Assembly: GCF_001194135.2 (NCBI RefSeq)
Contig: NC_068981.1
Location: 132,273,445 to 132,337,444 of the forward strand
Source of the DNA: Octopus bimaculoides
Lineage: Eukaryota
Length of the DNA stretch: 64,000 nucleotides
Direction of reading: 5' to 3'
Under the pieces are notes generated by a model. It saw nothing but the letters and a program-made list of their open reading frames with translations. It was not told where the DNA came from and did not search any database. The translations under genes and the position numbers were made by a program. Each line of letters opens with the position of its first letter. Within the stretch, counting starts at the first letter, position 1. This document shows, in pieces, positions 1 to 63,428 of the stretch.

Positions 1-987
1 ATAATTTATGAATTTGTTTCTCTTCGAAAGTCCTCTCCCCACACCCTCGGGAAAAAAATTTCCCCGCAAATTTCTTTATAATCGTAATCTATGCCGTTTG
101 AAAATTATTTATATATAATTTCATTAAAAGATATCCATTTTCCTAAAAGTTATAAGGGAAAAAATCGGATCGTGTGAACTTTCCGAAAGTCCTCTTCCTA
201 TCCACCCCTGTTCGGTAGCGCAAATTTTTGTTTTCATATTGGTCTAATGCACATTTTTTATACCTATTACACCTGTTTTTTTTTTTTTCTGGCCGGTTGT
301 TAAAGTAGTAATTAACCGTGATTGTTCAATCTAAATCGTATAGTGTTATGAATATAATGTTTTTTTCCTTTTTGATTGTAATGTTGCTAGCCCCTTTCCA
401 ACTTTGTAGGTAATTGCAATGAATAGCTACAGGCACTAATGAAAGAAGATTAATTTATATTCAACGCAGTCTTTTTTTTTATTTCTTACATCAAGCTTTC
501 TTATTTTGCATTTTGGATATGCCCTCTTATATGGTTCAACACGATGTTCATGGGGTATATTTATGATAATAGGCGTCACATACAAAACACAAAAACAATT
601 ATTCGTATATAACAGGGGTCCTCAATTGGTCTGCCGTGGTGCATTGCTACATTATATGGTATTATTGCATTATTGCTGCACCACAAAGGATATGTATGTA
701 GGTGTGTCGCAGATTTTTAAAAATATTTTTTTTGCCTCTTTAGAAAATTCATACTAATGCTTCAGCATTTTATAAAACGTGTTGTTCATGATTTTGTTAT
801 ATGCAAGTATGATTAAAAAGCAAGGTAAGCAATAATTTTTCTTATATTCTAACTATATTTTCAGTTCTAAAATCGTTCTTTTTAATAGAATATTCCATGA
901 AATGTGAGTCGTAATGGAAAGCCTTCCTCCCGTAATTTTTGTTTTGCTATGAGGTATTTCATAAGGCAAAAATAAAAAAAAATTGAG

Positions 988-33470: not shown

Positions 33471-33507
<37 letters not shown>

Positions 33508-42500: not shown

Positions 42501-45500
42501 TCCATCCATCCATCTTCTCCACCCACTATTCCTAGGATGCTTGTTGGAGTAGAGTCCTCAGACTCCTGCTCCATAGGGTCCTATTGGAAGCAACCATTAT
42601 TACAGTTTCTGGTTGGATTCCCAAGCATGACCAATTGAGACTGACACATAAAAGGCACCCACTACACTCTGTGGAGTGGTTGGCATTAAGAAGTGCATCC
42701 AGCTGAAAAAACCAAGTCAAATCAGAATGGAACCTGGTTTAGCTTTATGGCATGTCAGTCCCAGTTAAACCATCTAACCCATGCCAGCATGGAAAATGGA
42801 CGCTAAATGATGATGATGATATTAATTTTGGTCTACCCCTAAGTCTTCAACCAGTTGACTCAGCTTGAAGAATCCCTCTTGTGACATACTAATTACAATG
42901 TCTGTAGAATGAGAGCACTGATCTCTCAATGCAGAGAAGTAGCAGCTTGACCTGGGGAGACTTTCTAATTTCTGAGCTACACAACCAGTCAAGTAATGTT
43001 ACTTCAAAGATCCTTCAAAGGAACCCCATTTCAGCTGCTTATATTTAAAATTGTGCTCATACAGTCATTACCCTTCAATCATGACCATAGGTGACGATAG
43101 GCACAAAAATTGATTTGAAGATAACATGTTTCTTCCACCAATCTAAACAGCTATGATGTTTTGATTGCTAATTTTATGGAGAAAAAGATGAAGTAGAAAA
43201 AAATTGAAAGAATAAATGTAACTTACATATTTTTAAAAATTATTTCTCTACAAGTTTTTTTTTTCCTTCTAAACAGTATGAGAGAAACATCTCTATTGTC
43301 CCACTGCCTCTGCCACTAAAATTTATTTTCTAAACACTTTGTTTTACAAGCTTTTAGCATTGAAACTATTCATATTCTCCCAAAATATTCTACCTGTTTT
43401 ATGTTTAAATTGGTTAGATCCTACCTTTTGCACCTATCCTACAAAGTCATTCTAAAAATAAACAGTCACATCATTGAAATCTTACTGCTATGAAATAAGT
43501 GATGATTAATTCCAAGCAATGTAAATAAATAAGCAGTACATTTGATAGAATAATCTGAATGCTAAAGGCTTAAAGTTATTTTGAATTAAGATATTTAGAA
43601 ATCATATCTTTGCATATTATTATTTATGATAATTTTGTTTCTTTTTCTCCCTCATAGGTGGCATGTTTGAAATTTGTTAATAGCATGTTAAATGCAACAT
43701 CAACCCTTAATCATCGAGTTTTTCTGCAACATCAGTTGCTGGCAGCTGGCTTAGATATTGATTTCCTAGAAAAGGTATGTAAATTTCATACTAGTATTTA
43801 ATTAAGATCTTGTACAATTTATACTAGATTTTTTTTTTTTACTCAATGTAATTTAGGCCTGTTGTTCCCATCAAATTGTTATACATACATACTTATATAC
43901 ATAGATACATACATATGAACGTGTGTGTGTGTGTATATGCATGTGTGTGTGTGTATGTATGTGTGTGTATGTATATGCATGTGTGTGTATGTATGTATGT
44001 GTGTGTGTGTATATATTGTCCCACCCATGCCAGCATGAAAAGCGGACATTAAATGATGATGATGATGATGATGATAATATATACATATGTTTCATCAGAC
44101 TTTCCTCAACAATTTTAATATTTGTGTCTAATCTCTATAATGTGCATAATATCAAGTTCTTTATCTTCAGACAGTAAAACAAATTATTCAATTAATTCAG
44201 AATTTTCTATCTTGTTTTTCTGAAAGTTTTTTTTTTTTTTTAGCTTTTAAACTAATCACATCAGGCCAAAAGATTCTACCTGTTTTGAAATCTCAAAGCT
44301 ATGAGATGATACATGATTAATTCAAAGCNNNNNNNNNNGGGGGGGGGAGCATAGAAATTATTACCTGACAAAATTTATATGATGGAGAAGGGTGACTATC
44401 GGTGTTTTCTGCCTACCACTACTATCAATTCTGTCATGGGAAATGAACCTTGAAATAATGTCTGGTTTTTTTTTTGTTTTAATTTTTATATATATATAAT
44501 AGTCCCAGTATTTAAGTGCTTAGGGTATTGAGAAACTGTGGTGCATCCCAGTTACAACTTAATTTTGATTAATAAACAATGCATGCATTCATATATACAT
44601 CTAGACAGCAACATTTAAGGTTTCAGATCTTTTTTTATATTTATTAGAGGCTGTGTTTCAATTGTTGGAAACAACACAACTGTTATACAAAATTAAACTG
44701 CATTGCTTCTAGATTTTTAGTGCTGTGTTTCTCAACCACTTTTAATCTATGGAACCTTTTGATTCCTATTTTACTCTGAAGGACCTTCCTAGCAATTCGG
44801 TGTTTAAAAATATCCTGTTATATTTTTGCAATTAAATACTATTAGGAATTGTATTAAAAAAATTGTTAAAATATTTTGTTAACAAAGTCTTATATGGACT
44901 TCCACAAGGGCCATATGGACCCCAGTTGAAAACCATAATATTATAAGAATTTTGGAATTTCAAGAAAATATGGAATAATTCTATTTTGCAACATTGGAGC
45001 TTGAAGCAGATAAGCTATAAATAATAGCATGTAAATATTGGGTTAAAACCCTTTGAATAGAAAAGTCAAAAGCTGTCCATGGAACACATAGGGCATCTCT
45101 TGACTTATCTCATCCAAAGCATTTTTAACTCTACATTTATACATCATTATTTATCTGCTTCAAGATCCAGTGTTCTAAAAAAACAATATACTGTTAAGTT
45201 TTCAATAGTACATTCATTTAAATTTACTTTCTTTTCCATTTATTAGCAAGAAACTGAGGGAAATGGTTGCGAGTTGGCAGAGCTTCATCATGAAATTACT
45301 AATTGGAAGACCAATTTCATCAATGTTGAAAACATTCAAGAGGAACAAATAATGGCTGAAAGCAGAAATTCAATTCTTCGTCGAGAGGTAAGAAAAATGT
45401 TTATGGTATTACATTTGACCTGTTTTGACTGTCAGACCTATTTTGATTATTATATAAAGCACAAATCAGTTTATCATGTTGGGAATGGTTTAGGGATTCT

Positions 45501-46873: not shown

Positions 46874-49615
46874 CACGCACGAACGCACGCACACACACAC
46901 ACATACACAAGCACACATGCATGTCCACAATATATGGTAGAGCTCCATACAGTTTCCTTCTGCCAAATTTATTCATAAGGCATTGGTCAGCCCAGGGCTA
47001 TAATAGAAGATACTTGCCCTAGGTGCTACACAGTGAGACTGAACCTTGAAACTGCATGATTGTAAAACAAGCTTCTTAAGCACACAATCACACCTGTACC
47101 TATGTTAGGGTATCAACATCTATAGTCTAAAGGAAAGATATCTATAGTTGCAACAATCATTGACTAAATTATACTAATATGTTTATGACCAAGCAAATTT
47201 GAGATTTTGAAATAGTTATGAGATTAATTTTTTTTTGAAGTAATATCAGAAAAAAAAAATTAAACAGCTAATTGAATTCGTATATATATCATGTTTCTGT
47301 TTTGATCACTTGTCAATGCACATGGGTAGTTAAGAGGATATACTAAGAGGATATACAGAGAAAAACTATTTATATAAATTGTACTTCATACTTAAGGCTC
47401 TGATGAAGCTATAAGGTGTTACTCAGGCACTCAACTACGAGCCTACTGCATCTTACAGCAGAAACGGCTGTAAGCTAATGAAGTTCATAAGATAATCATT
47501 TATTCCTTTGTCATCTCATTTTCTTATCACTGCTCTGTACTCGTTCTGAAGCATGTGTATATTGAGTTCTACACCAAGTTATTAGCCTTACAATGCCTAA
47601 GTGAAATATCAAAATATCTATTTACTTCTTAATTATATCTTTGTAGAAATTAAAAGCATAAATTTCCTCAATATCTTTATGTGTATTTTATTATTATTTT
47701 TTTTTTCTTACAGGTGGATATTCTTCAAGCAAAAATGAAAGTAAGTACTCAATAATGTTTATTATACTAGCACTGCTTCTATTTCGTATTTGAATTTGTT
47801 TTTACATATGCATTGTTCAGGTATTCTCACACATACTTTGCCCGCTATATTCATATAAATCGTGGACTGGCGAAATGATTCATCTCTGATCCTGTTTGGG
47901 TAAAAGATGTTGATAAGCCACAAAAATGGCAAAACATCAATGTCCATCACTGCTAGATGGGATTAGAGGGGAGTTACCTCGCCTGTCCATTACTTTCAGG
48001 TGTATTAACACCTGGCACTTTGAGAGAGTATTCTCTACCATACTAAATTGCAGCCTACCAGCAAATACACGAGCCATGTATGTTCAGTATATGTGGTTGA
48101 TAATGTTTGTTACATGAGCGCTACTTCTATATCATATTTGAATTTATTCTGAAGTACTTAAAATTTGTTTTTGTATTCGCCTTGCAAGACACTCTAGAAA
48201 AGTTGTAACTGGTAATGCTTTGAAAATCCTTCTAAAAATAATATCCTTTAGTCATTTGATTTTGTATTATACATTCTTTGAGCCATTGCTGCGCATAATG
48301 ACATTTTAATTTATATTTATATCTTGGTACTTTCAGAATATTCAAAATGATTTTGAATCTTCAAAAAGTCATCTTACTGAGGTAAGCATTCATATTTTAT
48401 ATAAAAAAATGTTTTATTCAATAAAGTGTGACTTGCTGCTCAATGATTTCATGTAAAAAGAATTCCAAAAGTGAATACCTGGTGACATTCGGAGAGCTTT
48501 TCCAGTAATACTTTGTTTAAAACATTTATTCTCTGAAGCCTTTTGTGCATACATATATATGAGGGGTTAAAGTATGAGAGAAGGGGCAAGAGCATAGCAG
48601 ATTTCTTGCTGTAGAGAAGCTACATGACTACACACACACACACACACACACACAGATGCATATTCACATGCTCTTTCACTTTCCCTCTGTCTATATATAT
48701 ATGTATATATACATACACTCACTTTATGTGTATTTATAGATCTATCTATCTACCAGTCTATCTGTCTGTCTGTCTCTCTCTCTATGTATGTATATATATA
48801 TATATACACATAATTAAGGGATCAGCAAACATTTGCTTCACCACATACGGAAGTTCAGAAATAGCAGCTAAAAAAGCTGAGACTCCAACAGATAGCATTA
48901 CTTGTAACTCACAAAGGCAAACACCAGAAGAAAAGACAATGAAAACTAACCATTCGAAGTTAATCATAGACGCGTTTCTGGATTATGAGCGATAATACTC
49001 AATTTCCTTCATCGGTATGATATTCCAGTAGTAAATTCAACTATGCTAGCAAACCGTGCATGCATGAACGAGTGAACATTCATGCATCGGCACAACCTGA
49101 AAGCATAACCGAACCNNNNNNNNNNNNNNNNNNNNNNNNNNNNNNNNNNNNNNNNNNNNNNNNNNNNNNNNNNNNNNNNNNNNNNNNNNNNNNNNNNNNN
49201 NNNNNNNNNNNNNNNNNNNNNNNNNNNNNNNNNNNNNNNNNNNNNNNNNNNNNNNNNNNNNNNNNNNNNNNNNNNNNNNNNNNNNNNNNNNNNNNNNNNN
49301 NNNNNNNNNNNNNNNNNNNNNNNNNNNNNNNNNNNNNNNNNNNNNNNNNNNNNNNNNNNNNNNNNNNNNNNNNNNNNNNNNNNNNNNNNNNNNNNNNNNN
49401 NNNNNNNNNNNNNNNNNNNNNNNNNNNNNNNNNNNNNNNNNNNNNNNNNNNNNNNNNNNNNNNNNNNNNNNNNNNNNNNNNNNNNNNNNNNNNNNNNNNN
49501 NNNNNNNNNNNNNNNNNNNNNNNNNNNNNNNNNNNNNNNNNNNNNNNNNNNNNNNNNNNNNNNNNNNNNNNNNNNNNNNNNNNNNNNNNNNNNNNNAAGC
49601 CCGTCGTACATATAT

Positions 49616-50460: not shown

Positions 50461-52494
50461 AATAATAGTGCAAACTCAATGCAAATTTGTAATATTTCAC
50501 AGAGAAAATATTAAATATATAAACAACAATTTTTCACCTATGTTCATGTATATATATATCTATGATGTGTGTATGTATATGTATATATAATTTTTTGACC
50601 CTCTCTCTGCTTTTTTTAGGCCAGTAAAAAATCAAAAGATTATCAAGAAAGAGTCTTTGAATTACAAGAAAAAATGGAAACATTAATGGTGAGCACAAAA
50701 TGTATATTTGGTATATTCAATAACTGCCGTTGTTAGAAAGGAAAGAATTATATCCTTCTTTAAAGAATATATGTTTCAGTACCTTGAAAACTGGAATAAT
50801 CTCTTGTACTCTGCCTTAACATTCCAAAAGTGAATAACTGGTGGGTTATCACTTTTGGGGAGCTTTTCCAGTAATGCTTTGTTTAAAACATTTATTCTCT
50901 GAAGCCTGTTGTGCATACAGATATATGTGCATTCAGATTACTCAGTGAAATGTAATATTTATTGATTCACTTTGTTTTGAATTAATTAAGCATTATCTTC
51001 TAGGTTCAAAATTTCAATAATGTGATTTTGTTTAGTTTTAGAATGACATTGTAAGATAGGTGTGAGTGGCTGGATTTGGTCACTTTGAACATAAAACAGG
51101 TAGATTTTTTGGGACTGATACAGTCAGTTTAAATGTTTAACGGTAAACTCAGATCAATGAAATAAGACTTCTTGTACAAAATGTCATCTCCTGGTGGTTG
51201 AAATAAAAGGAAAATATGCATAGAATTTGTTTCAATAAATATATGCTATCAAATTCATTTTAGATTGATTTAGTAAATATATAAATTAGAGCTTATTTTT
51301 TTGTGATGCCCTAGCATGGAGACAGTCCAATGACTGAAACAAGTAAAAGAAGGAACTTTCAAATTAAAGAATAAAGATATGAACCATTAATTCAAGAAGG
51401 TGTTTTATTGCATTCCAAGTTCCATTAACACAATGCTAAAGAGCAACACAGATTAAGTCTATTTATCTTTCTCTGGTAGTGTAGATTTTAGAAGAGAGAT
51501 CACAGGTGTGAAATACATACTTAGTTCTTTGATATCTGTCTTGTGATAAGTTTTCTTATTTTTTTACCTGTTCTTAATTTATCTTATAAATTTTCATTGA
51601 AATCTTAGCAATTATACGAAGAAAAAACTGGACAACTTGCAGGCAAAAATATAATTGCAGATGTATTGCGTTCTGTGGAATCCCCAGAGTTTACACCAGT
51701 GCGTCGAGATAGCTCTGCTTCAGTTACTTCAGCAGTAACAAATGTTATTCCTGGTAATTATATGTTTTTTTTTCAAATATATGGTTATCAGCTGCTCTCC
51801 TAGGTCTTTTTCTCTCCCACTCTCTCTCTGAGTGGTTGGCGTTAGGAAGGGCATCCAGCTGTAGAAACTCTGCCAAATTAGATTGGAGCCTGGTGTTGCC
51901 ATCCGGTTTCACCAGTCCTCAGTCAAATCGTCCAACCCATGCTAGCATGGAAGGCAGACGTTAAACGATGATGATGATGATGATATATATATATATATAT
52001 ATATATANNNNNNNNNNNNNNNNNNNNNNNNNNNNNNNNNNNNNNNNNNNNNNNNNNNNNNNNNNNNNNNNNNNNNNNNNNNNNNNNNNNNNNNNNNNNN
52101 NNNNNNNNNNNNNNNNNNNNNNNNNNNNNNNNNNNNNNNNNNNNNNNNNNNNNNNNNNNNNNNNNNNNNNNNNNNNNNNNNNNNNNNNNNNNNNNNNNNN
52201 NNNNNNNNNNNNNNNNNNNNNNNNNNNNNNNNNNNNNNNNNNNNNNNNNNNNNNNNNNNNNNNNNNNNNNNNNNNNNNNNNNNNNNNNNNNNNNNNNNNN
52301 NNNNNNNNNNNNNNNNNNNNNNNNNNNNNNNNNNNNNNNNNNNNNNNNNNNNNNNNNNNNNNNNNNNNNNNNNNNNNNNNNNNNNNNNNNNNNNNNNATG
52401 CATGTGTGTATATATAAATATTATTTACAAAATAACAAGATGGAATGAACAGGCTTTGAAATGCATATTATGAGATTATTACCCAGATAATATT

Positions 52495-52540
<46 letters not shown>

Positions 52541-54102
52541 GCATTGTTTTGTTAAATAAGGTAAGCCCTCTAACACTCTAATCCTGCAGTCAGTCTCATT
52601 GCAATTGATATTGCTGGCCAGCAGGAGAAGGCAGTACCATCATAGCTGCATTATAGGCTGCTGGGCAAATCAGTGCACTGGGCCCTATAGTATTTATTGA
52701 CAACAAACCACTGTATACATAGATTTGAATTCGTCTCCTAGACTCATGGAGCCACACTTGCAGTTGTTCAGTGTGTCTATGCCTCAAAATGGCATTGTGA
52801 GCAGGAGATACATTTTGCTGAGCAACCCTATCTCCACTACATATACATATTAAGGCTCACTTTAACCCGACACATGTAAGATTCTGAATCTGTTTGCAAT
52901 ATTTTAATTTCTTTTCTTCCCTTCATACAAAAATCTGTCATTCTTTTACGCTTCCATTTACTATTTAATCTGATACATTCCATTTCAGCTCCTCCACCAG
53001 TACCACCAATCAGGGAGAATAACTCTAATTACTCATCCAAAAGAAAATTTGAACCGAAAGTTAATTTACCAGTCTTGAACTGGCTCCCATTGAACAATGT
53101 TCGAAAAACAATTTTTGAAGTAAGTCCTTTGAAGAACATAAACCTCTTTCATCTTCTCATGTTCAATTATTATATTAGTTAGTTGATACACAGAACAGAT
53201 TGAATGATCTGAAAATTATAACATTGTTGTTATATGGAAATGAAAAATGGCTTTTAGCTACTTAAATTATTAAAAAATTACTATTTGTAAATCTCACAAT
53301 GAGAGATATTCAGTACTTTGGAGTAAAGATTGTTTGCCAACATAACATAGCAGTCCTGGTTTAGGATGAATGTTGCTGTAATTTAACCCCAGGAGACATC
53401 ATCTCCAGCCGGCTATATGACATGATTTATATAAATCCAGACCCTGTTCCACACACTTCTATACATAGATATTGTTTTGAGCTGAGTTGGGGTGCTAGAT
53501 TCCCTTGTTCGAAAATATAAGGACACAGGTCGTGTCATATAGCTAGCTGGAGACGATGTCTCCCAGAGCTAAATTACAGCAACATTCATCCTAAACCAGG
53601 ACTGCCATGTTATGTTGGCAAACAATCTTTACTTAGATTATATTTTAGTGTTTTAAATTATAAAAGGTAACTTGCAGGTGTGGCAGCATGGTGAGAAATT
53701 TGCTTCCTAATCACATGGTTCAGGTTTCAGTTCCACTATGTAGCAACTAGGGCAAGTGTCTTCTATTTTAGCCTCAGGCTGACCAATGCCTTGTGAGTAG
53801 ATTTAGAAGATGGAAACTGAAAGAAGCCTGTTGTGCATGTGTGTATGTGTAGACACAAGTGTGACTGTGTGGTAAGAAACTTCTTTCCCAACTNNNNNNN
53901 NNNNNNNNNNNNNNNNNNNNNNNNNNNNNNNNNNNNNNNNNNNNNNNNNNNNNNNNNNNNNNNNNNNNNNNNNNNNNNNNNNNNNNNNNNNNNNNNNNNN
54001 NNNNNNNNNNNNNNNNNNNNNNNNNNNNNNNNNNNNNNNNNNNNNNNNNNNNNNNNNNNNNNNNNNNNNNNNNNNNNNNNNNNNNNNNNNNNNNNNNNNN
54101 NN

Positions 54103-54133
<31 letters not shown>

Positions 54134-54799
54134 TTGTGTGCCTGTGTTTGTCCCCCTAGCATTGCTTGACAACCGATGCTGGTGTGTTTATGTCCCCATC
54201 ACATAGCAGTTTGGCAAAAGAGACCGATAGAATAAGTACTAGGCTTACAAAGAATAAGTCCCGGGGTTGATTTTCTCGACTAAAGGCAGTGCTCCAGCAT
54301 GGCCGCAGTCAAATGGCTGAAACAAGTAAAAGAGTAATAACCTGGCACCTGTATAGAAATATACTTCCTTCGTAAGTCTTTGGACTCTGAAGTTGGGTCA
54401 AGTGTCTCTATCTTCTCCATTTATATACTTTGCCATATGGTTTATTTTGGATGCAAAAAGATTTATCTTTAGCTATTTAGCTAGTTTATGCAAAAATGTG
54501 CCCAATCTGAGAAAAATAACACCTATCAATAAAGTTATCAAATATATTTAGCTCAGGAAATGGATAATGGATGGTAGGACAGAAGAAAGAGAAGACAGGT
54601 TTTCTGTGGAAGCTGAGTAATATTTTATGTATTGTTTCAGGAACTCAGTGACGATGTCATATACAAAGAAATTGATTTCTCTGATTTTGAAAGCAAATTC
54701 CAGATTTCTAATAATAATAACAATGCCTTCAACCGATCTTTTAAATGTGAGTATTACAAATTATTCTAGTTAACTTTTTCAATTTCAGTATAAGTTACT

Positions 54800-54840
<41 letters not shown>

Positions 54841-57800
54841 GGTATTATTATGGGTACACTGATGAGGTAAAGTGTATGATTTCATTTGTTCTACAACTAT
54901 TATGTAATTATTTCAGCATTTTGTTGAAACATGTGTATGTTTTCTGCTTATTATTATTATTTCTATTATATGCCTTAAGAAAGTTTGTATAACTGTTAAT
55001 GATAAATTTTCGGCTTTCAAATGGAAGGAAAGTTAAACCTTGGTTTGTCAACTTTGCCTTTCGTTCTTATGTAGTTCTTTAAATAAATCGATCCCAGTCA
55101 AGTATTGGGGTCGATTTAATATACCTATTAATCATCCTAGATACGAATGGTATTATTAATAGGAAATGAAGAATACTTTATTTGTGACTGATATATATAT
55201 AAACGTGACTACCATAACATTGCACAGGATCGTAAGTTATGTTAAGAAGGGGAAATAATTACAATTTAGTTGCGCATATAAAATTGTAATTGTGCCAAGG
55301 GAAATAACTCACATAACTATTTCAGAAGAATATCAAACATATTCAGATGTATATTTTAATAGCTTCTTTGTATTATACTATTTTACCCTTTTCTTCATTA
55401 GGACTTAATTTTTAAAATCAACTAATTAGTTTGAATTTCAAACAATATTCTTATTTACTTTTTCTTTTGGTAGTTTCAGTCAAATAGACTGAGGACATAC
55501 TGTACTAATTTTATTACTTCATGAAAACTGTTTTTATTTGTTTTAATAGCTGTTCGCAAATTGAAAAACAGACTGAAGGTGTTGGATAATCATCGTGCGA
55601 GAAATTTAGGTATGTTATTTTTGTATATTTTACATTAGTTTTACAATTTCAGTCTTTTGAAGACACAACTTATTAGATGCATATTTTGTTTGATAGCAGC
55701 TAAATACCCTCAAATAACATCATGCTATCTATTTTTTTAAAAGATAAAGAATTTAGTCCTACTGTGTGGCATCTTGGGTCAATATCCTCAACTATAGCCC
55801 TGCATGGAAGTCTGTCGTGTGTGTGTGTTACTGTCTCCTTGCTTTGACTTCGTATGGTAGTTGTAAATGAATGTCACCATCATGCAAGCATTTCTTTCAT
55901 TTCCAATCTTCTGTGTAAACATGCCAAATCAAATACTACCTTACTTGGAAACAGATGAGGGTTTGTGACAGGAAAGGTATCCGGCTGTTAAAAATCTACC
56001 TCGACAAATTCTGTCCAACCTATACAAGCATGGAAAAGTGGACATTAAAATGATGATGATGATGATGAATTCAATAGTAAGCAATTAAAAAAATACTAAT
56101 GTTTCTTTCATGTTGGTGATGTCAGATTGTATTGTGTGGATGTAGTTTGGCAGGCTGTTTTGAAATGTTCTTTAAATAAGATTTTTGATGTGAAATTGTG
56201 TGTTGAAACAGATTGTGAAGTCCATACATCAGTGGAATGTCATTAGCTACAGCTTGGAAATTGTTGGCCATGTGTTTCTTTAGTCCTCGAATGTTTGACC
56301 ACATCATCATGTGAGCATTGAGGATCTTTTCTCTCTCCTCATGCACTTGTGATGTTGTTTCTCTTATGCTGGAGATGTACGATTGCATTGCCTGGATGTA
56401 GTTTGGCAGGTTGTCTATCGATGTTCTGCTGGACTTGTCTGTGGGGAGTACACAACCTCTCTATTCTTCGTGCATTGTATGAGTTTATGCAGGCCACATG
56501 CGGATTCTTAAACAACAAAATATAGTGTTTTTCAACATGTTGCTATCCTGGTTGAGGCTCATGATTTGCAAGATTCTTGATGTGACATTTTCCTTTTGTG
56601 TATGTTTAACCTTTGCCTTTCTTCAACTCCTCTTTTACAGTTATAACTCAAAGAAAGATTGGTCATTCTGCCCATCAAATACGTGAATATATTGACAAAT
56701 ATGACACCAAAAGTCTCCATGGAGACTATGCGGAACTTCTATTAAAATATGTGCCTACCAAAGATGAAGTAAGCTTTATTGTATTTTTTTCCATATTTAT
56801 GCATTCTTAGCTTCAGTTATATAGTAATTTCTACTGAACACACCTATTGAGCTGACAAATGAACCTCCATGCTGGTCGGTCAACCAGCTAGAAATAGCAG
56901 TCAGATTTCCATCACATCACACTCTATTATTAAGAAAGAATGGATACATTGAGTACCGTAGTTCGAAATATATAAAAGATTTGATTGTTACAACTATAGC
57001 AAAAACAGCATACACTCACACATACACACCATGTATGTGTGAGGTAGAACACAATATTACAAGCACAGTAGGAGCTTTTGCTTTATTCTTTCATTGCAAT
57101 ATGGTCAGAAGTTTCAACTTGCATCACTACAAAAGAAATATGATCAGTTCTATCTATATATATATTTGTTTGAGAATAGTACAGTTGAAAGGTATTAAAA
57201 CAATGTCACTTTGTATTTTACTGAAACTAAGACAGTAAAATGTACAAAAAATAGTGGCTGTTATTGTTATGTAAACTGATTATAAGGAGAAATACATTGT
57301 TATTTTTGCAATACACTACTAAATACATGAAATAAATCATTGCTCGTGTTTATGGAGGAACTGTGACAATATTTTTGACGACCAAGTGAGGGCTTTTATC
57401 ATTGTTATACATTTTATATGGTCTTCGTGCTTATTGTACTTATCAGTTATTATTTTACTTCTTCCTTTTCAGGCAAAGATTCTTTCCAGATATTCCAAAG
57501 ACTATTTCACTTTGGACATGTCAGAACAGCTTATGTATCAGGTAGGTTTCAATTTTATCAATATAATAAAAAAAATGTACATGATAAGTAACTTGTTTGT
57601 TGATGAATAATTAATTAAAAACTGATCTCAGTAATATTGTGTCAAAGAAATATGACTTTCTGTATGTAACAAAATGATTATCACCATCTAAGGACCATTT
57701 TAATGCTTGTAAAATTATCATTACGAAGGCAAAGGATGCCATTGTGTATAACAGGCTCTCTTGTTTCACTTAAAACTGTCTCTTACTTCCCATATTGTAG

Positions 57801-60800
57801 TCAGGCTTCTTGATTCCTCAGCCACAGGATCAATATTAACCATGTAGAATCCTTCTTCCGGCCATTCTTCAACCAACATAACTCTGAAAACAACAAACCT
57901 GCTCTTAAAGCTACCATATTTGTTGCTCATATGCAACAAGCCATTCTCAAAGTTCTCTTTTTTATCTTCACTCTTGCTTTTAATTAACAAGTGTGAAAGT
58001 TCCTTGGATCACTTCAGCCCAACATAGTACTCAGGCCTGATGGTATTCCTATTAAATTTCTGTAGAAGTATATCTCAGAGCTATCTCCAATCTTATGATC
58101 GAAGAACTTGCAGAAAGTGGTGAGCTGGTTATGGGCATCTACTCTAAATGTATTGAAACATAAGACTGTGTTTTTTTTTATTTTTACCAATAACACCAAG
58201 ACTCAATAATTCCATATATCAAAGAAATATTGTCTGCAGCATAACACCTTCATTACTCATGATAAAGATTAAACTAAAACCCTCATACTTTACGTAAGAC
58301 CTTACAATCTTTAGCAATTTTTTTTCATTATAACTGCACGTCAATGATATCAGTCAAAACTATACTTCAAAAGCTAAGTTTCATATTCATGGCAAGAAAA
58401 TGCTTCAGCTTTGAACAGTTCCTGATATTTGACAAAGAGTACTATTTACATATCATACATTCAAGATGGGTTATCTGTTACATTACACTCAAACAATTTA
58501 GATGACATCAAGAAAAAAAAAAGATTATCCAATAAATTAGCAAACCACTTGATGACTGACTGACCATCTCTTGTACTATTACTATAATGGTTCCTACTTC
58601 CTCAAATGAAGAAACTATGTACTATCAAAACCCAGTCAGTACAGTCATCTCTTACCTTCTTTTAAAAACAAAAATGAGTCTAATACTGCACACCCCTTAC
58701 TAGACAATTTGCCCAGTGCTGTAACTGCTAACCTCTAGAACTATCTTCCTACCAATTCTAGAAGGATTGGTATTCAGGTCAAGTTAAACATGGTGCTAAC
58801 CTCAAAGTACCATTGTCACCAGTCTGTAGAGGCCTGTAAAGAATACAAACACTACTCTTTTCCTTGAGCTAAATAATTTGTAAAACATGGTTTATCTATA
58901 CTTTGCTAAAGTAAAGTTTCTAAACTCATAATAACCTTAAATGACATTTTTTACTCAAAATGCTTATCACAGTAATACTGTAAATATTACAAAATGTATT
59001 TATATTTTGCAAACACACACGGAATATGTATATTTACATGTTTAATTTACCTAATATCCTTGTATTGGAAATATTTTGCATATTGAAACAAAATTTTACA
59101 TCAAATAATGTAAAGATAAGCCTTTAACTTGTTTCAGTCATTGAACTGTGGCCATGCTGAAGCACCACCATAAAGGCTGTAGTCAAACAAATTGCACCCA
59201 GTACTTATTCTTTTAAGTCTGGAACTTATTCTATCTGTCTCTCTTGCTGAATTACTAAGTTATGGGAATGTAAACATCCCTACACCTGTTGTCAAGTGGT
59301 GGTGGTAGTGGGGACACATACACACACACACATATGTACGATGGGCTTCTTTAAGTTTTTAAAGTCTGGCACTTAATCTATCAGTCTCTTTTGCCAAACC
59401 TCTAAGTTACAGGTATGTAATGAAACCAACACCAGTTGCCAAATAGCAATGAGCAATAACCACTAACATAGAGACACCCCCCACCCCACCCCACCCCACC
59501 CCCACACAAGATGGGCTTCTTTCAGTTTCTGTTGACGAACTCCAGCCTGACACTATAGTAGAAGACATTTGCCCAAGGTGCCATGAACCCATAATCATAT
59601 GGTTGGGAAGCAAATTTCTTACCACACAGCCATGCCTGTGCCTATGTTTCGTGTAAAATGTAAATTTTTTATAAAATTTCCTATAAATTCAACAGTTACC
59701 CTAATTATAATTGATTTTGTTTTAAATATCTTAACTAATTGTTTTCTTGCAGTTGTCTCACATTGATAGAGTAGAGAACAAATTGAAAGTGATGACTTTC
59801 ATGGGACAGTACCCAGATATTGTCAACAACCTGAAACCAGTAAGTAACTGCCTTAATATTAAATGTAAAATCTTAATTGTTGAAAATGTGTAAAATAATC
59901 TATACATTTGACACATTCTGACTTCATTTGCATCTTCTTTGTTATTTCTATATTTCAAATTTGAACTTCTAATTCCACTAAAAATTATGATAATATTATT
60001 TTATCCCTTGTACAAACTATCTGCTAGGGCAGATGGCTGTCAACTACTAGGCTGTAGATCAGACAAGGATCATTTGGTACCAGACCGCATAGAAAGAATA
60101 AACTTTAAAATTTTATTTCTATTTTAGTGACTATTGCATTCTGCAGTGTGATTTTGCAATTTATATGTATTATATATGTAATATATATGCATTATATATG
60201 TAATAATTAAATTATATATTATGCACTTTATTGTGTTTAATTATGTTCATGATCCCTGATCTGTGGAGAAATTGTCTTGCATAAACCGAGTCTGTGGAGT
60301 ACAAAAAGGATTGGGAACCACTGTACTTGGGGACTCCTCAGTAGTCATTAAGTTTTCTGTTAATCATATACAGACCAATAACATTACAAGAAATATTAAG
60401 TAATAATCATGTAATGTACTAAATGAATTTTTCAGCTTATTTTCTTATTCAAACTGAGCAAATTCAATCTCATTAAACTGTCAAGTATTAAGATGATACC
60501 CTATTCAAATATTTCATTATATGTGTACCATCTTTAGAATATGATAAATTTATGATATAGTGCATATAACAGTCACTTCTAAGAGCCTTAGGTACTAAAG
60601 AATTAACTCTTTAGCATTCAGATTACTCTGTCAAATGTAATACCTATTTATTCACATTGTTTTGAATTAATCATGCATTATCTTGTAACTTCGAGATTTC
60701 AATAATGTGACTGATTATTTTTACAATGACATTACAGAGTAGGTTTGAGAGGCTGGGTCTTGTTGGTCTTGAATATAAAACAGGTAGAATATTTGGGCCT

Positions 60801-63428
60801 GATATGCATGGTTAAGATGCTAGAGTTAAATATGGATTAATGAGCCAAAAAGTAATGTAAGCTTAGAATTAACAAAAACTAATGTAAACTTAGAATGTCC
60901 TTGCAGTAACAAATTGAAAAAAATATTCTGTTTGATTTGAATCCACTCTAAAGTCCAGTTTCTTTTGTATATTGAAACCCAGATGCAATATAGTGAAACA
61001 TGGCACAATATTATGAAAACTGCATGCTTTTTTGTTTTTTTTTTCAGCAAATTACTAAAATCACTGAATGTTCAAAATCTCTAGCAGATAATGCAAAACT
61101 GAAGAAAATTTTTGAGGTATTTAAGTTTTTTTTTTTTTTGCTTTTTTTATGGGCATCCCATTCCCTCTCTGACACACCAACATGCCAGTCTTGTCTCTCT
61201 GTAGCTTGAGTCCCAGTGCAGCTCCTCCTTCCATTGCCTCCGGTGGTTTGGCAGTTAGCCTGAAATTCTTCAGGTGGCTTATGACCACCTTTGCCGACAG
61301 CCAAAATAGCTTGTCATGTGAAGGACAAAAAGACAGAAGCAGAGAAAGAATTACAGTAGTCTATCTGGAAGGGTCACTTACAATGTCCACGTGCTCTGTC
61401 TGCCACCGTACTGTCTATCTACGTGGAAGGAGTCGCTTACAACGTTCATGTGCTCTGTCTGCTCTCATACCCTGTCCACTGCCAACTGACTGCTCATGCC
61501 TCGCCGACCCCGCATGCTCACCGTGGCCCTTCCAATGGGACCCACAGGCCCCACTTCCAACAGGACATGCGTACTCCCTCATTTCTGGTCCTTCCCTACA
61601 ACACACCCTGGCTCATAACACCACAGTTATTACAAAAATTCTGGTTTCACACACAAAATTTTTGTAATAACTTAGTGTGAATGATACACCATTTGTCCAA
61701 TTTTGGTAAGGTTTTTTGTTCTTTCATGTATGCATAAATATGTATGTTAGTTTATGCATTTATTCATAATGTACTTAGTATTTTAGGAGTTTAAATCTTT
61801 GTTTTTGAGTATTCAATTTACCTAATGTTGTCCAAACAGGACCACTGTCTTTTGAATTAACCAATCAGTTGATTTTTATAATTATCATTATGCATTAGTT
61901 TCTTAAAAAAGAGCTTATTTTATCACCAAAGTAGATACCTTTCTGCTTGTTTTGATTTAAAAAAAAAATAATCATTTTACTTATATTCTCATAACTTATT
62001 ATTTGTTGAAAAGTTTATAATATTGTTCTTTTCCATAAATAGATTATTTTGGCATTCGGTAACTACATGAACAGTTCCAAGAGAGGTTGTATTAATGGTT
62101 TTAAACTGGAATCATTAACAAAAGTAAGTTGAAAGATGTTTTTCCAGTCCTTTTTCTTTCCTCGGGAATTCAGGTGTAAGAGAAATTTGTACCAGTCAAA
62201 GATTGTGTTATGATAGGTGTCATATAGCTTGTTTGAAAGAAAGTTAAGTTTATTTCATTTCTGGCTAACAGTTTACGTAGTGTGTGTGTGTGTGTGTGTG
62301 TTTTATCTGCAGTGCCTTTGATATTTTTAATAAAGTTATTCCTTTGTTTTGCAGTTGTGTCAGATAAAATCCAAGGACAACAATCAAACTCTCCTGGAAT
62401 ATCTTGTTGATATCATTTGTTGCTATTATCCAACATTAATATTCTGGTATGATGATATTGACTTGCACATAAAGAGATCAGGTGAGCTTTATATGTTCTG
62501 ATTAAAAAGATGATAAATATTTTAGGGAATAAATATTAAGACCTGAGAGCTTTGATGAATTTTTGTATATGATTATTTTTATAAGAGTTTAATAAAATAG
62601 AAGTAGCACAGATAGTGATTTCAAATTTTGGCACAAGGCCGGTAATTTTTAGTTGAGGGGTAAGTCGATTACATCAACCACGGTGTTCAACTCGTGCTTA
62701 TTTTATCGACCCTGAAAGGGTGAAAGGCAAAGTGGGCCTCTGCGGAATTTGAACACAGATATTATGAGACGAATCAGCTACTGTAAAATGATACCAGACA
62801 TTATAAAAGTTGTAAGAAATTAAATGAAGTTCAGTGTCCCAAACACACATACAAAATTGCACATTAATAACCTTTGTGCTGCATCTATCTTTATTTTATG
62901 TTGTAAACGTTACGGTTTTGAAGGGATATAACTTCGTCTTTATCTCGATTGTTACTATTATTTGTTGAAATCAAGACAGGCAGATGATAGTACAAGAGTA
63001 ATGAACAGGGAAGATGTAATATGTGTTAACTGGGTGGGAGCCAACTGTTATAGAAAAGAGAAAGTAAAACAATGAAGAAATACTGGAAATTCTAGATTTC
63101 TGGAAGCTGGATAAGAGGTCCAGTACTATATATTATGTTTACAAAATGATTATAAAATAAAAGTAAATACTATGGTCTAGATTTATGATAGTAAGACACA
63201 TTCTACCACGAGGCAATTGTTTTAGATCCAACACACATTTTCAGGTCAGATCACTTGGCAAATAAATGCACCTAAAAAAAAACATTTAATGTTTTTATAT
63301 ATTTTTTTCTTTTATATATTTCAGCTTCATATCAATCCATTGCTGTAGATATATTTACCTTGAGAAAAGGAATCGATCTGATGAAGTTTGAGAGGGAGAA
63401 AAATACATCTATCAATGAAACGCTTGAA
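23842..63428 (+). CDS. FMNL: Spliced gene model: divergent formin-like (FMNL/FRL subfamily) protein, 24 coding exons, 925 aa in window, 3'-incomplete
   Basis: All junctions are AG/GT with matching phases and no in-frame stop. The translation has FMNL-like motifs: DDEHDCLLCLKYML, VACLKFVNSML..NHRVFLQHQL, LPVLNWLPL..TIFE, RARNLVITQRK, IILAFGNYMNSSKRG..GFKLESL, IKSKD..QTLLEYLV. The subfamily was assigned from recalled motifs, not a search. Confidence 0.9.
29476..29517 (-). ncRNA. Minimal hammerhead-like motif, degenerate
   Basis: The minus strand reads acta-CTGATGA-GCCTAcaactgaTAGCT-GAA-ACTAGT-C-aagt; core intact, helices I and II imperfect. Confidence 0.45.
30761..31284 (+). CDS. FMNL: Exon 2, Ser/Asp-rich low-complexity N-terminus with a polybasic segment
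   Basis: ttttag acceptor, 524 nt open frame (ORF 30832-31332), GTG|gtaagt donor. Confidence 0.85.
31305..31670 (-). mobile_element. SINE family A inserted about 20 bp downstream of the exon 2 donor
   Basis: Matches the family; related copies at about 29025-29660, 37420-37710, 38480-38840, 46645-47100, 53675-54335 and 59120-59645. Confidence 0.8.
31729..31782 (+). CDS. FMNL: Exon 3, DTLSQLDNGGSNSDNEQK
   Basis: tttcag acceptor, AAG|gtaatt donor, 54 nt, phase 0-0. Confidence 0.8.
32478..32680 (+). CDS. FMNL: Exon 4, GBD/DID region (…LQKLKGDLRIAEE)
   Basis: cttag acceptor, AA|gtaagt donor, ORF 32478-32684. Confidence 0.88.
33564..33717 (+). CDS. FMNL: Exon 5, FVLEYINKPNRGMILMVHLLQ…
   Basis: ttttgcag acceptor, CTG|gtatgt donor; resembles the FMNL WVREFL..ENKGLDVLVEYL segment. 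Confidence 0.88.
39107..39157 (+). CDS. FMNL: Exon 6, DDEHDCLLCLKYMLRFK
   Basis: tttcag acceptor, AAA|gtaagt donor; resembles the FMNL DDVHVCIMCLRAIMN segment. Confidence 0.9.
40020..40465 (+). mobile_element. Solo LTR (Gypsy-like), 446 bp
   Basis: TGTA…TACA termini, 4-bp TSD AGTT (40016-19 and 40466-69), AATAAA near 40355, locally GC/CpG-rich. Confidence 0.75.
40705..40803 (+). CDS. FMNL: Exon 7, TAIHKFLDIRHSLETVSHSLINGISKTKLAALQ
   Basis: ttatag acceptor, CAG|gtaaaa donor, 99 nt. Confidence 0.88.
41812..42063 (-). mobile_element. tRNA-derived SINE family 'F' with a CORE-like central domain
   Basis: Minus-strand tRNA head plus gttgtgttcttgagcaaaacatttcatttcacgttgctccagtccactcagctgg; copies at about 5060-5170, 41380-41545, 45585-45900 and 46255-46570. 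Confidence 0.75.
42305..42454 (+). CDS. FMNL: Exon 8, FH3 (IFTICLTEVNG…EPMRFKLLM…)
   Basis: ttacag acceptor, CAG|gtgcgt donor, 150 nt. Confidence 0.9.
43658..43774 (+). CDS. FMNL: Exon 9, FH3 (VACLKFVNSMLNATSTLNHRVFLQHQLLAAGLDIDFLEK)
   Basis: catag acceptor, AAG|gtatgt donor, 117 nt. Confidence 0.92.
44724..44937. mobile_element. hAT-like MITE, decayed
   Basis: ctgtgtttctcaacc … ggaccccagttgaaaaccat ends; related end at 28470-28495. Confidence 0.5.
45247..45387 (+). CDS. FMNL: Exon 10, dimerisation/coiled-coil start
   Basis: attag acceptor, GAG|gtaaga donor, 141 nt. Confidence 0.85.
47396..47476 (+). ncRNA. Type I hammerhead-like motif with extended helix II
   Basis: GGCT-CTGATGA-A-GCTaTAAGGTG…CATCTTAcAGC-A-GAA-AC ggct GT-A-AGCT; intact CUGAUGA and GAAAC core, GUA site. 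Confidence 0.6.
47714..47740 (+). CDS. FMNL: Exon 11, 27-nt microexon VDILQAKMK
   Basis: Long T tract plus ttacag acceptor, AAA|gtaagt donor. Confidence 0.8.
48337..48381 (+). CDS. FMNL: Exon 12, NIQNDFESSKSHLTE
   Basis: tttcag acceptor, GAG|gtaagc donor, 45 nt. Confidence 0.8.
48963..49021 (-). ncRNA. Type I hammerhead-like motif
   Basis: The minus strand reads ATCATA-CCGATGA-A-GGA..TGAG/CTCA..TCC-A-GAA-ACGCGT-C-TATGAT; 6-bp helix I, palindromic helix III, U4 replaced by C. Confidence 0.6.
49680..50330 (+). mobile_element. 3' end of an RTE-like LINE with three C2H2 zinc fingers, inactivated
   Basis: GVKAFEEAR…CTVC..HLRTH, CSVC..HFKIL*, CNLC..HIRYH in one frame with one stop (50156-58); short 3' UTR followed by (AT)n. 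Confidence 0.7.
50620..50688 (+). CDS. FMNL: Exon 13, coiled coil ASKKSKDYQERVFELQEKMETLM
   Basis: tttttag acceptor, ATG|gtgagc donor, 69 nt. Confidence 0.83.
51609..51753 (+). CDS. FMNL: Exon 14, linker
   Basis: cttag acceptor, G|gtaatt donor, 145 nt, ends in phase 1. Confidence 0.83.
52989..53119 (+). CDS. FMNL: Exon 15, vestigial FH1 (APPPVPP) plus FH2 lasso (LPVLNWLPL…TIFE)
   Basis: tttcag acceptor, GAA|gtaagt donor. Confidence 0.92.
53322..53633. mobile_element. MITE with about 105-bp terminal inverted repeats
   Basis: agtaaagattgtttgccaacataacat…gctatatgaca is mirrored at the right end with few mismatches. Confidence 0.85.
54641..54746 (+). CDS. FMNL: Exon 16, FH2 (ELSDDVIYKEIDFSDFESKF…)
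   Basis: tttcag acceptor, T|gtgagt donor. Confidence 0.9.
55550..55609 (+). CDS. FMNL: Exon 17, FH2 (…LKVLDNHRARNL)
   Basis: taatag acceptor, G|gtatgt donor. Confidence 0.9.
56110..56520 (-). mobile_element. Penelope-like element RT N-terminal fragment, decayed, with an internal ~55-bp direct repeat
   Basis: Minus frame CVLPTDKSSRTSIDNLPNYIQAMQSYI…EKILNAH…IPLMYGL resembles the PLE xDKG and P.YGL motifs. Confidence 0.5.
56641..56768 (+). CDS. FMNL: Exon 18, FH2 (VITQRKIG…LLLKYVPTKDE)
   Basis: ttacag acceptor, GAA|gtaagc donor. Confidence 0.92.
57473..57541 (+). CDS. FMNL: Exon 19, FH2
   Basis: tttcag acceptor, CAG|gtaggt donor, 69 nt. Confidence 0.9.
57720..58900 (+). mobile_element. Decayed CR1/L2-like LINE RT region
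   Basis: GPDGIPIKFL*KYISELSPIL and LQKLSF-IHGKKML remnants with many disruptions. Confidence 0.5.
59753..59839 (+). CDS. FMNL: Exon 20, FH2 (LSHIDRVENKLKVMTFMG…)
   Basis: ttgcag acceptor, CCA|gtaagt donor, 87 nt. Confidence 0.9.
61048..61116 (+). CDS. FMNL: Exon 21, FH2 (…SKSLADNAKLKKIFE)
   Basis: ttttcag acceptor, GAG|gtattt donor, 69 nt. Confidence 0.9.
62043..62123 (+). CDS. FMNL: Exon 22, FH2 post (IILAFGNYMNSSKRGCINGFKLESLTK)
   Basis: aatag acceptor, AAA|gtaagt donor; GNYMN signature. Confidence 0.95.
62355..62481 (+). CDS. FMNL: Exon 23, FH2 (LCQIKSKDNNQTLLEYLV…)
   Basis: ttgcag acceptor, G|gtgagc donor. Confidence 0.92.
63325..63428 (+). CDS. FMNL: Exon 24, FH2 (ASYQSIAVDIFTLRKGIDLMKFEREKNTSINETLE)
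   Basis: tttcag acceptor; 3' end set at the U12-type donor GAA|ATATCCTTTT. Confidence 0.8.

Follow-up and report, generated by a model that had tools for sequence, protein, structure and literature searches.

A formin of the MWHF subtype with a minimal FH1 domain in Octopus bimaculoides

Gene model and domain organization

The stretch of DNA analysed here (the window) comprises 64,000 nucleotides of contig NC_068981.1 from Octopus bimaculoides (assembly GCF_001194135.2, positions 132,273,445 to 132,337,444 of the forward strand). It carries a formin gene which has been named "formin-like protein 3" in RefSeq. Our model for the window consists of 23 exons, which code for 914 amino acids with no stop codon and yield an exact substring of the RefSeq protein XP_052826704.1 (residues 74-987). 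A Ser-rich N-terminus is followed, in this order, by a DID-DD region, a coiled coil, a 38-residue linker, the proline motif IPAPPPVPP, a 22-residue spacer, the FH2 domain, and a basic tail. That the gene codes for a formin of the MWHF subtype (see below) with this anatomy is a conclusion in which we have high confidence. The features are listed below, with coordinates referring to the window.

788..824, + strand: alternative first coding exon (MILLYASMIKKQ...), from comparison with RefSeq isoforms
23842-23875: second alternative first coding exon (MEAVSDFLSRH...), also from comparison with RefSeq isoforms
30761-31284 and 31729-31782, + strand (span 30761..31782): Ser-rich N-terminal exons
32478-32680, 33564-33717, 39107-39157, 40705-40803, 42305-42454, 43658-43774, and 45247-45387, + strand (span 32478..45387): the seven exons of the DID-DD (Drf_GBD-like/FH3) region, from Pfam Drf_FH3 and the alignment with FMNL1
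47714..47740, + strand: coiled-coil micro-exon (VDILQAKMK)
48337..48381, + strand: coiled-coil exon (NIQNDFESSKSHLTE)
50620..50688, + strand: coiled-coil exon (ASKKSKDYQERVFELQEKMETLM)
51609..51753, + strand: exon A, end of the coiled coil and Ser-rich linker (QLYEEKTG...VTNVIP), from splice sites and an exact match to the RefSeq models
51747..51753, + strand: first part of the proline motif (Ile, Pro, and base 1 of the Ala codon), from translation over the junction
51754..52988, + strand: intron between exons A and B, 1235 nt including the estimated gap length
51826..51990, no strand assigned: SINE copy with a (GAT)n(TA)n tail, in O. bimaculoides only
52008..52397, no strand assigned: assembly gap of 390 N (estimated) in an intronic (TA)n(TG)n microsatellite, wholly intronic, with microsatellite on both flanks
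52989..53119, + strand: exon B, remainder of the proline motif and 22-residue spacer up to LNW (IRENNSNYSSKRKFEPKVNLPV), then the FH2 lasso (LNWLPLNNVRKTIFE)
52989..53008, + strand: remainder of the proline motif, (A)PPPVPP, which completes the entire FH1
53081..53083, + strand: codon of the lasso Trp, in an alignment column occupied by Trp in 100% of the 53 other formins in the comparison
54641..54746, + strand: FH2 exon (ELSDDVIYKEIDFSDFESKFQ...)
55550..55609, + strand: FH2 exon (VRKLKNRLKVLDNHRARNL)
56641..56768, + strand: FH2 exon with the knob Ile (VITQRK; Ile codon 56643-56645)
57473..57541, + strand: FH2 exon
59753..59839, + strand: FH2 exon
61048..61116, + strand: FH2 exon
62043..62123, + strand: FH2 exon with GNYMNSSKRG (GNYMN at 62058-62072)
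62355..62481, + strand: FH2 exon with the post Lys (QIKSKD; Lys codon 62367-62369)
63325..63428, + strand: last FH2 exon within the window, followed by a U12-type AT-AC intron

Exon A (145 nt) is flanked by a TTAG acceptor and by the donor GTAATT and ends in phase 1; for exon B (131 nt), the acceptor is TTTCAG and the donor GTAAGT. The U12-type intron, with the 5′ splice site ATATCCTTT beginning at 63429, is conserved. A proline-rich open reading frame at 38973-39011 (YSYPPPLSPPIPN), which is conserved in Octopus, was considered as a cassette exon and rejected. It represents the pyrimidine tract just 5′ of the acceptor at 39107, lies inside the DID-coding part, and is found in no protein model.

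The FH2 domain is matched by Pfam over profile positions 2-372 of 372 (E 4.6e-69). Its best match among solved structures is the FH2 domain of FMNL3 (mouse/human, PDB 4EAH), which aligns over its full length (E 2.9e-59) and has the same residues at the positions of the knob Ile, GNYMN, and the post Lys. An FH2 that looks intact had been noted in the preliminary description, and the closer analysis agrees: all landmarks by which the protein is recognized as a formin are present (lasso Trp, the Ile of NLVITQ, GNYMN, and the Lys of QIKSKD), as are 38 of 40 near-invariant FH2 positions, and the alignment column of the knob Ile is 100% Ile.

For the N-terminal part, Drf_FH3 scores 41-45 bits (cut-off 27), and the DID-DD region aligns with FMNL1 (PDB 4YDH, E 5.5e-20). 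Of the three Pfam domains named in the preliminary description, FH2 and Drf_FH3 are thus found above the cut-off while Drf_GBD stays below it (22 bits vs. 30.1), and residues 1-110 of FMNL1 give no match. Proteins of the MWHF subtype are characterized by the lack of a DAD or WH2-like motif C-terminal to FH2. In the full RefSeq protein, the C-terminus of which is outside the window, no DAD is detected by Pfam, but the FMNL controls likewise give no DAD hit.

The low GBD score is one of three observations that might indicate a decaying gene or pseudogene in which the FH1 has eroded. The others are the long octopod branch in the tree described below and the Pfam score of the octopod FH2, which is the lowest among the MWHFs tested (234 bits vs. 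243-300). We assign such decay only a negligible probability, given that the reading frame is intact over all 23 exons in the window and in four species, that dN/dS is 0.21 in the comparison with O. vulgaris, that the near-invariant FH2 residues are retained to the extent just stated, and that the U12-type intron is conserved.

The proline motif and the intron that splits it

Exons A and B join in frame and without a stop codon (...VTNVIP/APPPVPPIRENN...LNWLPL). At the nucleotide level, the junction between 51753 and 52989 is ...ATTCCTG/CTCCTCCACCA, so that an Ala codon is split G/CT by the intron, and the spliced product reads ...SAVTNVIP-A-PPPVPPIRENNSNYSSKRKFEPKVNLPVLNWLPLNNVRKTIFE. The resulting proline-motif peptide is VIPAPPPVPPIRE. 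The motif IPAPPPVPP is split by the intron that carries the assembly gap, and no other run of prolines occurs in the region from the coiled coil to the FH2 lasso. According to the operational definition of Pruyne (a proline-rich segment N-terminal to FH2 with two or more adjacent prolines), the FH1 is PPPVPP, which is 6 residues long and counts as one dense track.

All eight octopod protein models seen (from O. bimaculoides, O. sinensis, O. vulgaris, and Argonauta hians) read IPAPPP[VA]PPIR directly after the linker. The junction is supported by annotation pipelines and by genome comparison. In the comparison with Argonauta, 8 of the 9 motif residues are conserved, and the 25 residues that follow the motif, up to and including the lasso Trp, show 92% identity, with 60% in the upstream linker; between O. 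bimaculoides and O. sinensis, these 25 residues are 100% identical. The better conservation of the motif than of the adjoining linker suggests that the motif has a function. The minimal FH1 is real and conserved across Octopus and Argonauta, and it represents the extreme of a trait that is seen in all bilaterian MWHFs sampled.

A gap of 390 N in exactly this intron raises the question of a poly-Pro FH1 exon that is hidden in the gap or exists as an unannotated cassette exon, the more so as GC-rich proline-coding repeats assemble poorly in a genome of about 32% GC. The same gap, with the same sequence, is present in assembly GCA_001194135.2. Gap-free versions of the orthologous intron are available from O. 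vulgaris (727 bp), O. sinensis (717 bp), and Argonauta (5.9 kb). The bases to the left and right of the gap align with the introns of O. vulgaris and O. sinensis at 89%-90% sequence identity, and the equivalent of the gap in these two species is a (TA)n(TG)n microsatellite of about 90 bp. The SINE beside the gap, one of eight copies within the window, is missing from the orthologous introns of O. vulgaris and O. sinensis.

No proline-rich open reading frame was encountered when the introns of O. vulgaris and O. sinensis were translated completely in three frames, nor in any plus-strand frame of the gap-free Argonauta intron (at least 5 Pro in 12 residues), nor in the readable part of the O. 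bimaculoides intron (at least 4 Pro in 12 residues). At a threshold of at least 6 Pro in 12 residues, the four loci yielded only unrelated pyrimidine tracts or pieces of SINEs. No isoform from the four species has an extra exon at this position, the gap is flanked by TA/TG microsatellite next to a SINE, and more distant MWHFs are likewise short in FH1. We consider a hidden or cassette exon highly improbable: the gap hides no exon and leaves the gene model unharmed. The reduction of the FH1 to one short motif, as initially proposed, is therefore borne out by the in-frame junction, which supplies PAPPPVPP alone, and the phase 1-1 poly-Pro exon that would have contradicted it is found neither in the three gap-free introns nor in the eight models from four octopod species.

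Assignment to the MWHF subtype

MWHF is one of nine subtypes of animal formins and, to our knowledge, is absent from vertebrates, insects, and nematodes. The subtype (multiple-wing-hairs-related formin) has been defined by Pruyne in 2016 (PMC5047451) and dates back to choanoflagellates, as indicated by our tree and by Pruyne 2017 (PMC5628938). The reference members are S. purpuratus LOC591753, C. teleta CAPTEDRAFT_227846, C. gigas LOC105322386, and N. vectensis v1g208334 (PMC5047451), and cephalopods are not represented in that sample.

A neighbour-joining tree was computed from 56 FH2 domains (372 columns, 100 bootstraps), with the subtype labels anchored by the lasso block alone of Pruyne's reference alignment. 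The octopus gene is placed in the MWHF clade with a bootstrap value of 93, apart from FMNL, while support inside the clade is weak (13-66). The clade also contains the sea-urchin MWHF reference and sequences from coral, sponge, nemertean, annelid, echinoderm, hemichordate, and amphioxus. One of its members, Lytechinus P0206, has a lasso segment identical to that of Sp LOC591753, the MWHF reference in Pruyne's alignment, and amphioxus has one protein in each of the MWHF and FMNL clades (P0207 and P0217). In the homologue search, the best relatives (613-357 bits) all have an MWHF-type lasso, while FMNL-type sequences reach at most 273 bits.

The protein resembles other MWHFs in its FH2 clustering, in a Drf-like DID-DD followed by a coiled coil, in the short FH1 typical of bilaterian members, and in the lasso context [PS]x[VA]xLPxLNWxP, where octopus PKVNLPVLNW is close to Capitella PRVNLPMLNW. 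It differs from them by the shortest FH1 seen, by a G-domain/GBD region that is more divergent, with a score below the Pfam cut-off, and by a long Ser-rich N-terminal extension.

The gene had initially been described as FMNL-type and as a possible lineage-specific paralogue, and a competing assignment is that of an FMNL which has lost its FH1, either the octopus orthologue or a duplicate specific to cephalopods. It would agree with the RefSeq label, with the FMNL3 FH2 as the best structural match, and with the lasso signature shared by FMNL and MWHF, which is present here (Pro at position -4 of the Trp in LPVLNW and Phe as the second aromatic residue in ...RKTIFEEL). Among the FMNL1/2/3 (FRL) formins, FMNL3 indeed aligns in the FH2 and FMNL1 in the DID-DD. 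The FMNLs, however, form a separate clade (from bee, amphioxus, leech, nematode, and vertebrates), from which the octopus FH2 is excluded, and they have a long multi-track FH1, which the octopus protein lacks. Also lacking is the lasso context TK[YF][RK]LPxLNW..LKPNQ that is seen in nearly all FMNLs examined. Within the MWHF clade, the gene groups with other lophotrochozoans, as expected for an orthologue. We thus regard an FMNL origin as very unlikely. "FMNL-type" proved imprecise and the notion of a lineage-specific paralogue wrong, as the gene belongs to an ancient subtype and a short FH1 is shared by all 10 other bilaterian MWHFs sampled. Judged by its sequence, the gene is the octopod orthologue of the MWHF subtype, which is the sister of FMNL, and the RefSeq name FMNL3 is corrected accordingly. 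With the subtype already described, the gene is its octopod member and as such a modest curiosity.

FH1 size across animal formins

For a comparison across subtypes, the prolines in the 142 residues before the lasso and the number of dense tracks were counted, with the following results.

Octopods: 9 prolines, 1 track
Other bilaterian MWHFs: median 15 prolines, 1 track
Non-bilaterian MWHFs: 23 prolines, 2 tracks
FMNL: median 30 prolines, 3 tracks, runs of up to 11 prolines
DAAM: 38 prolines, 4 tracks
DIAPH: 46 prolines, 7 tracks

In all bilaterian MWHFs sampled, the FH1 is short and comprises one or two dense tracks, with the octopods at the extreme. With Pruyne's definition, the FH1 has 6 residues in octopods compared to 6-98 residues (median 17) in other bilaterian MWHFs. 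A proline run about 20-25 residues before the lasso Trp is present in every bilaterian MWHF sampled.

Functional interpretation

In the literature searched, we found no biochemical study of any MWHF, and the mechanism proposed here is drawn from sequence features and from the behaviour of other formins. An intact FH2 dimer would nucleate filaments and remain on barbed ends. The proline track offered by each chain would be single, short, and imperfect, at a distance of about 25 residues from the lasso Trp. Such a track may recruit at most one profilin-actin per FH1, and elongation from profilin-actin is therefore expected to be slow relative to FMNL, DAAM, and DIAPH formins. The protein would then act mainly as a nucleator and barbed-end binder, which we propose tentatively and with somewhat less than even confidence. 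For the conserved motif, a role in weak binding of profilin, in the docking of SH3 domains, or in both is conceivable. Considered together, the MWHF identity, the minimal FH1, and this mechanism constitute the best overall explanation, to which we attach a probability of roughly 0.6.

The initial suggestion that the protein nucleates, caps, or bundles actin rather than elongating it with profilin is a plausible one. Its best functional precedent is Delphilin (GRID2IP), a natural formin with minimal proline-rich sequence in FH1, for which actin nucleation and binding to barbed ends have been found but no acceleration of elongation (PMC6004577). Delphilin differs from the octopus protein in belonging to another subtype, in having a PDZ-domain N-terminus and no DID-DD, and in not descending from within FMNL/MWHF/DAAM.

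Engineered formins point in the other direction. When mDia1 is cut from 14 polyproline tracks to 2, it still accelerates elongation from profilin-actin, and the Bni1 tracks nearest to FH2 can alone sustain robust elongation (PMC5969902, citing Courtemanche and Pollard 2012). From these results, a single proximal track may be enough for profilin-driven elongation. By analogy, Delphilin argues against this and truncated mDia1 and Bni1 argue for it. The single FH2-proximal track could then be a working minimal FH1, and the protein a profilin-dependent processive elongator which is slower than multi-track formins. The retention of a proline run at a similar distance from the lasso Trp throughout the bilaterian MWHFs sampled is in line with this, as is the conservation of the motif and the following spacer beyond that of the neighbouring linker. 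The track is, however, short and interrupted (the longest run in PAPPPVPP being 3 prolines), and the proline-minimal Delphilin gives no acceleration. We consider a working minimal FH1 possible, although on balance unlikely.

A different use of the motif is also conceivable. The class II SH3 consensus is PxxPxR, which is fitted by PVPPIR in Octopus and PAPPIR in Argonauta, with the Arg present in all four octopods. The motif might thus mainly dock a partner with an SH3 or WW domain instead of profilin. Nemertean, annelid, and echinoderm MWHFs lack the Arg after the motif, and the roles in binding a partner and in binding profilin are not mutually exclusive. Docking as the main role appears improbable to us.

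Evolutionary implications

On account of its DID-DD, Drosophila Mwh has been placed in the same subtype and interpreted as the ecdysozoan remnant of an MWHF (Pruyne 2016, PMC5047451). It has wholly lost FH1 and FH2, in contrast to the octopus protein, which retains a conserved FH2. The FH1 sizes reported above hint that the module for profilin-coupled elongation was already weak in the lineage before its loss in ecdysozoans.

A more far-reaching and speculative scenario, which we consider rather unlikely in its entirety, is that bilaterian MWHFs gave up multivalent profilin recruitment. With one FH2-adjacent track and no DAD (FMNLs carry C-terminal DAD/WH2 motifs; PMC5047451), they would be profilin-independent nucleators, barbed-end binders, or scaffolds, and would represent an evolutionary intermediate toward the FH1/FH2-less ecdysozoan Mwh. 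The octopods, with a single motif of 6-8 residues, would then show the furthest reduction among the living formins of this line in which the FH2 is still under constraint.

In bilaterian MWHFs, and particularly in those of octopods, a one-track FH1 is combined with an FH2 that is well conserved. These proteins may thus serve formin biochemists as a natural experiment on the minimum number of proline tracks that suffices.

Gene model and exon junction

The window (about 32% GC, AT-rich animal DNA with 11 N gaps) is identical in sequence to O. bimaculoides GCA_001194135.2, chromosome CM046601.1. A gene model was assembled manually, using open frames, splice sites and tblastn guided by homologues, and was then reconciled with RefSeq. 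The final model has 23 exons and no stops, and over its whole length matches residues 74-987 of XP_052826704.1 exactly; RefSeq labels this protein "formin-like protein 3 isoform X1". The window does not include the last three exons or the exon with which the longest isoform begins. The proline motif (FH1) is split between two exons:

51609-51753, exon A, canonical splice sites
51826-51990, 165-bp SINE in the intron
52008-52397, N gap in the intron
52989-53119, exon B, canonical splice sites

Exons A and B are joined in frame via a split Ala codon, resulting in ...SAVTNVIPAPPPVPPIRENNSNYSSKRKFEPKVNLPVLNWLPLNNVRKTIFE. There are two alternative first coding exons, 788-824 (MILLYASMIKKQ..) and 23842-23875 (MEAVSDFLSRH..), which precede a shared Ser-rich exon by about 30 kb and 7 kb; the longest isoform has a third promoter, upstream of the window.

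Exon 63325-63428 is followed by a textbook U12-type AT-AC intron, with the 5' splice site /ATATCCTTT at 63429-63437 and a CCTTAAC branch site about 12 nt before the AC 3' end. All four octopods conserve this intron: O. bimaculoides (GCA_001194135.2 locus, ~69928-70789), O. vulgaris (~34565-35402), O. sinensis (~63040-63877), and Argonauta (~70817-74759). In O. vulgaris, the model CAI9716045.1 continues through the intron (...ISFLAKTS...), probably as an artefact of annotation.

The assembly gap between exons A and B

Because the gap is wholly intronic, the reading frame of the coding sequence across it is not at issue. The comparison used orthologous loci from O. vulgaris, O. sinensis, and Argonauta hians, all three free of N. 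The orthologous intron has 727 bp in O. vulgaris and 717 bp in O. sinensis, with 89-90% identity over the first 73 bases and over 590 bases to the right of the gap. The gap-equivalent stretch in both species is a microsatellite, ...CTCTCTC(AT)n(GT)n...GTGCATGTGTGTATATATAAAT, which is also found in O. bimaculoides, with the SINE inserted immediately before it. The 5.9 kb intron of Argonauta has no window with at least five prolines in 12 aa in any forward frame. When the four whole loci were scanned for at least six prolines in 12 aa, proline-rich ORFs were found only as unrelated pyrimidine tracts or SINE pieces. A proline-rich open frame at 38973-39011 (YSYPPPLSPPIPN), which O. vulgaris and O. 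sinensis have also conserved, was rejected as an exon: it is a pyrimidine tract preceding the 39107 acceptor.

IPAPPP[VA]PPIR directly follows the linker in all eight clustered protein models (four from O. bimaculoides, from two annotation rounds, and two each from O. sinensis and O. vulgaris) and also in the Argonauta orthologue. Isoform differences are limited to the first exons and one C-terminal artefact. Since the gap-free introns lack a proline exon and the models share the junction, the hidden poly-Pro exon that would have refuted the preliminary description is excluded, and the gap is harmless to the gene model. The single short proline motif beside FH2 in the preliminary description is confirmed; the interpretation built on it is supported in part.

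Elements of this SINE family are about 160 bp long and carry a (GAT)n tail; the window has eight copies (51826-51990, 8454-8611, 16004-16138, and five weaker ones). Three of the best copies, including 51826-51990, have an N gap no more than about 50 bp away, suggesting that gaps in this assembly mostly mark SINE-associated microsatellites. Immediately to the right of another gap (49116-49596), a formin intron carries a pair of adjoining ORFs bearing C2H2 zinc-finger motifs (49829-50278, forward strand). Only zf-met passes in Pfam, most scores being below the cut-offs, and the pair is probably a piece of a ZNF gene or of a mobile element.

Assignment to the MWHF subtype

The closest non-octopod relatives are 31-41% identical and include no canonical FMNL. 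They are from nemerteans (Lineus, Tubulanus), the annelid Owenia, echinoderms (Asterias, Holothuria, Apostichopus, Lytechinus), the hemichordate Saccoglossus, amphioxus, the sponge Oscarella, and corals. MWHF (multiple-wing-hairs-related formin) is the ninth animal formin subtype, sister to FMNL and frequently mislabelled as such; it lacks a DAD and has been found in molluscs, annelids, echinoderms, sponges, and cnidarians (Pruyne 2016, PMC5047451). The lasso reads ...RVNLPMLNWTP (Capitella) or NRNRLMSKHALPMLNWNT (sea urchin LOC591753) in MWHF, compared to TKYRLPxLNWxxLKPN in FMNL (Pruyne 2016, PMC5047451). Against this alignment block, the octopus lasso PKVNLPVLNWLP is of the MWHF kind, and the Lytechinus protein P0206 has the exact sea-urchin MWHF string.

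In a neighbour-joining tree (56 FH2 domains, 372 columns, Kimura distances, 100 bootstraps), the octopods fall into an MWHF clade (support 93) together with P0206, corals, sponges, a choanoflagellate, nemerteans, Owenia, echinoderms, Saccoglossus, and the amphioxus protein P0207. Bee Frl, amphioxus FMNL2 (P0217), and leech, nematode, and vertebrate FMNLs form a separate clade. The earlier designation as FMNL-type is thus replaced. Inside the MWHF clade, the octopods are placed among lophotrochozoans, as expected of an orthologue, with weak inner nodes (13-66). Judged by this placement, the gene is the octopod MWHF orthologue, neither an FMNL nor the lineage-specific paralogue that had been considered.

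Domains, FH1 length, and constraint

Pfam detects FH2 (E 4.6e-69) and Drf_FH3 (41 bits). Among solved structures, the FH2 domain aligns end-to-end with FMNL3 4EAH (E 2.9e-59), and 38 of the 40 near-invariant positions (at least 80% conserved among 53 other formins) are kept, including GNYMN and the 100% invariant Trp and Ile columns; FH2 is intact, as initially described. The DID-DD region aligns with FMNL1 4YDH (E 5.5e-20); no match to the N-terminal 110 residues of the latter was found in the octopus protein. Drf_GBD scores 22 bits in this protein and 22-24 bits in octopods, below the Pfam cut-off of 30.1, and passes in nemertean, sea-urchin, and amphioxus MWHFs (44-58 bits). Octopods may have lost or greatly altered their Rho-GTPase binding (GBD-like exons 32478-33717).

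Proline content of the 142 residues preceding the lasso (median prolines; longest run; dense tracks, i.e., at least five P in seven)
Octopods: 9; 3; 1
Other bilaterian MWHFs (10): 15; median 4, range 3-5; 1
Non-bilaterian and choanoflagellate MWHFs: 23; median 7; 2
FMNL: 30; median 9; 3
DAAM: 38; median 8; 4
DIAPH-like: 46; median 8; 7

The last proline run is about 20-25 residues before the lasso Trp in bilaterian MWHFs. From this position and the survey, a short FH1 is a property of the clade, common to the bilaterian MWHFs sampled, with octopods at the minimum. No mention of this trait was found in the formin papers examined that name MWHF.

The dN/dS ratio versus O. vulgaris is 0.21 (1176 coding bases, coiled coil to FH2). 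Compared to Argonauta, identity is 8/9 residues in the proline motif, 92% over the 25-residue stretch that runs from the motif to the lasso Trp inclusive, and 84% in FH2, versus 60% for the linker directly upstream of the motif. Being better kept than this linker, the motif is, by this comparison, under constraint of its own. The class II SH3 consensus is PxxPxR. PVPPIR (Argonauta: PAPPIR) fits it and is a candidate SH3 match; its Arg is not conserved outside octopods.

Possible function

The FH2 dimer would nucleate filaments and ride barbed ends, and one imperfect proline track per chain would make profilin-actin delivery weak at most. We give this reading a probability of about 40%. Delphilin, which has a minimal proline sequence, nucleates without accelerating elongation (PMC6004577), which favours the reading initially proposed and argues against a minimal but working FH1. 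The latter seems rather unlikely to us. However, mDia1 remains able to accelerate elongation when reduced to two tracks, and the FH2-nearest tracks of Bni1 are enough alone (PMC5969902), results which count against the reading initially proposed.

Implications for the formin family

In amphioxus, one formin (P0207, labelled FMNL2 or FMNL3) belongs to the MWHF clade and another (P0217) is a true FMNL. Chordates are stated to have lost MWHF (Pruyne 2016, PMC5047451); if the placement of P0207 is right, this loss postdates the cephalochordate split. The octopus gene adds a mislabelled member to a subtype already described but unstudied in the literature searched.
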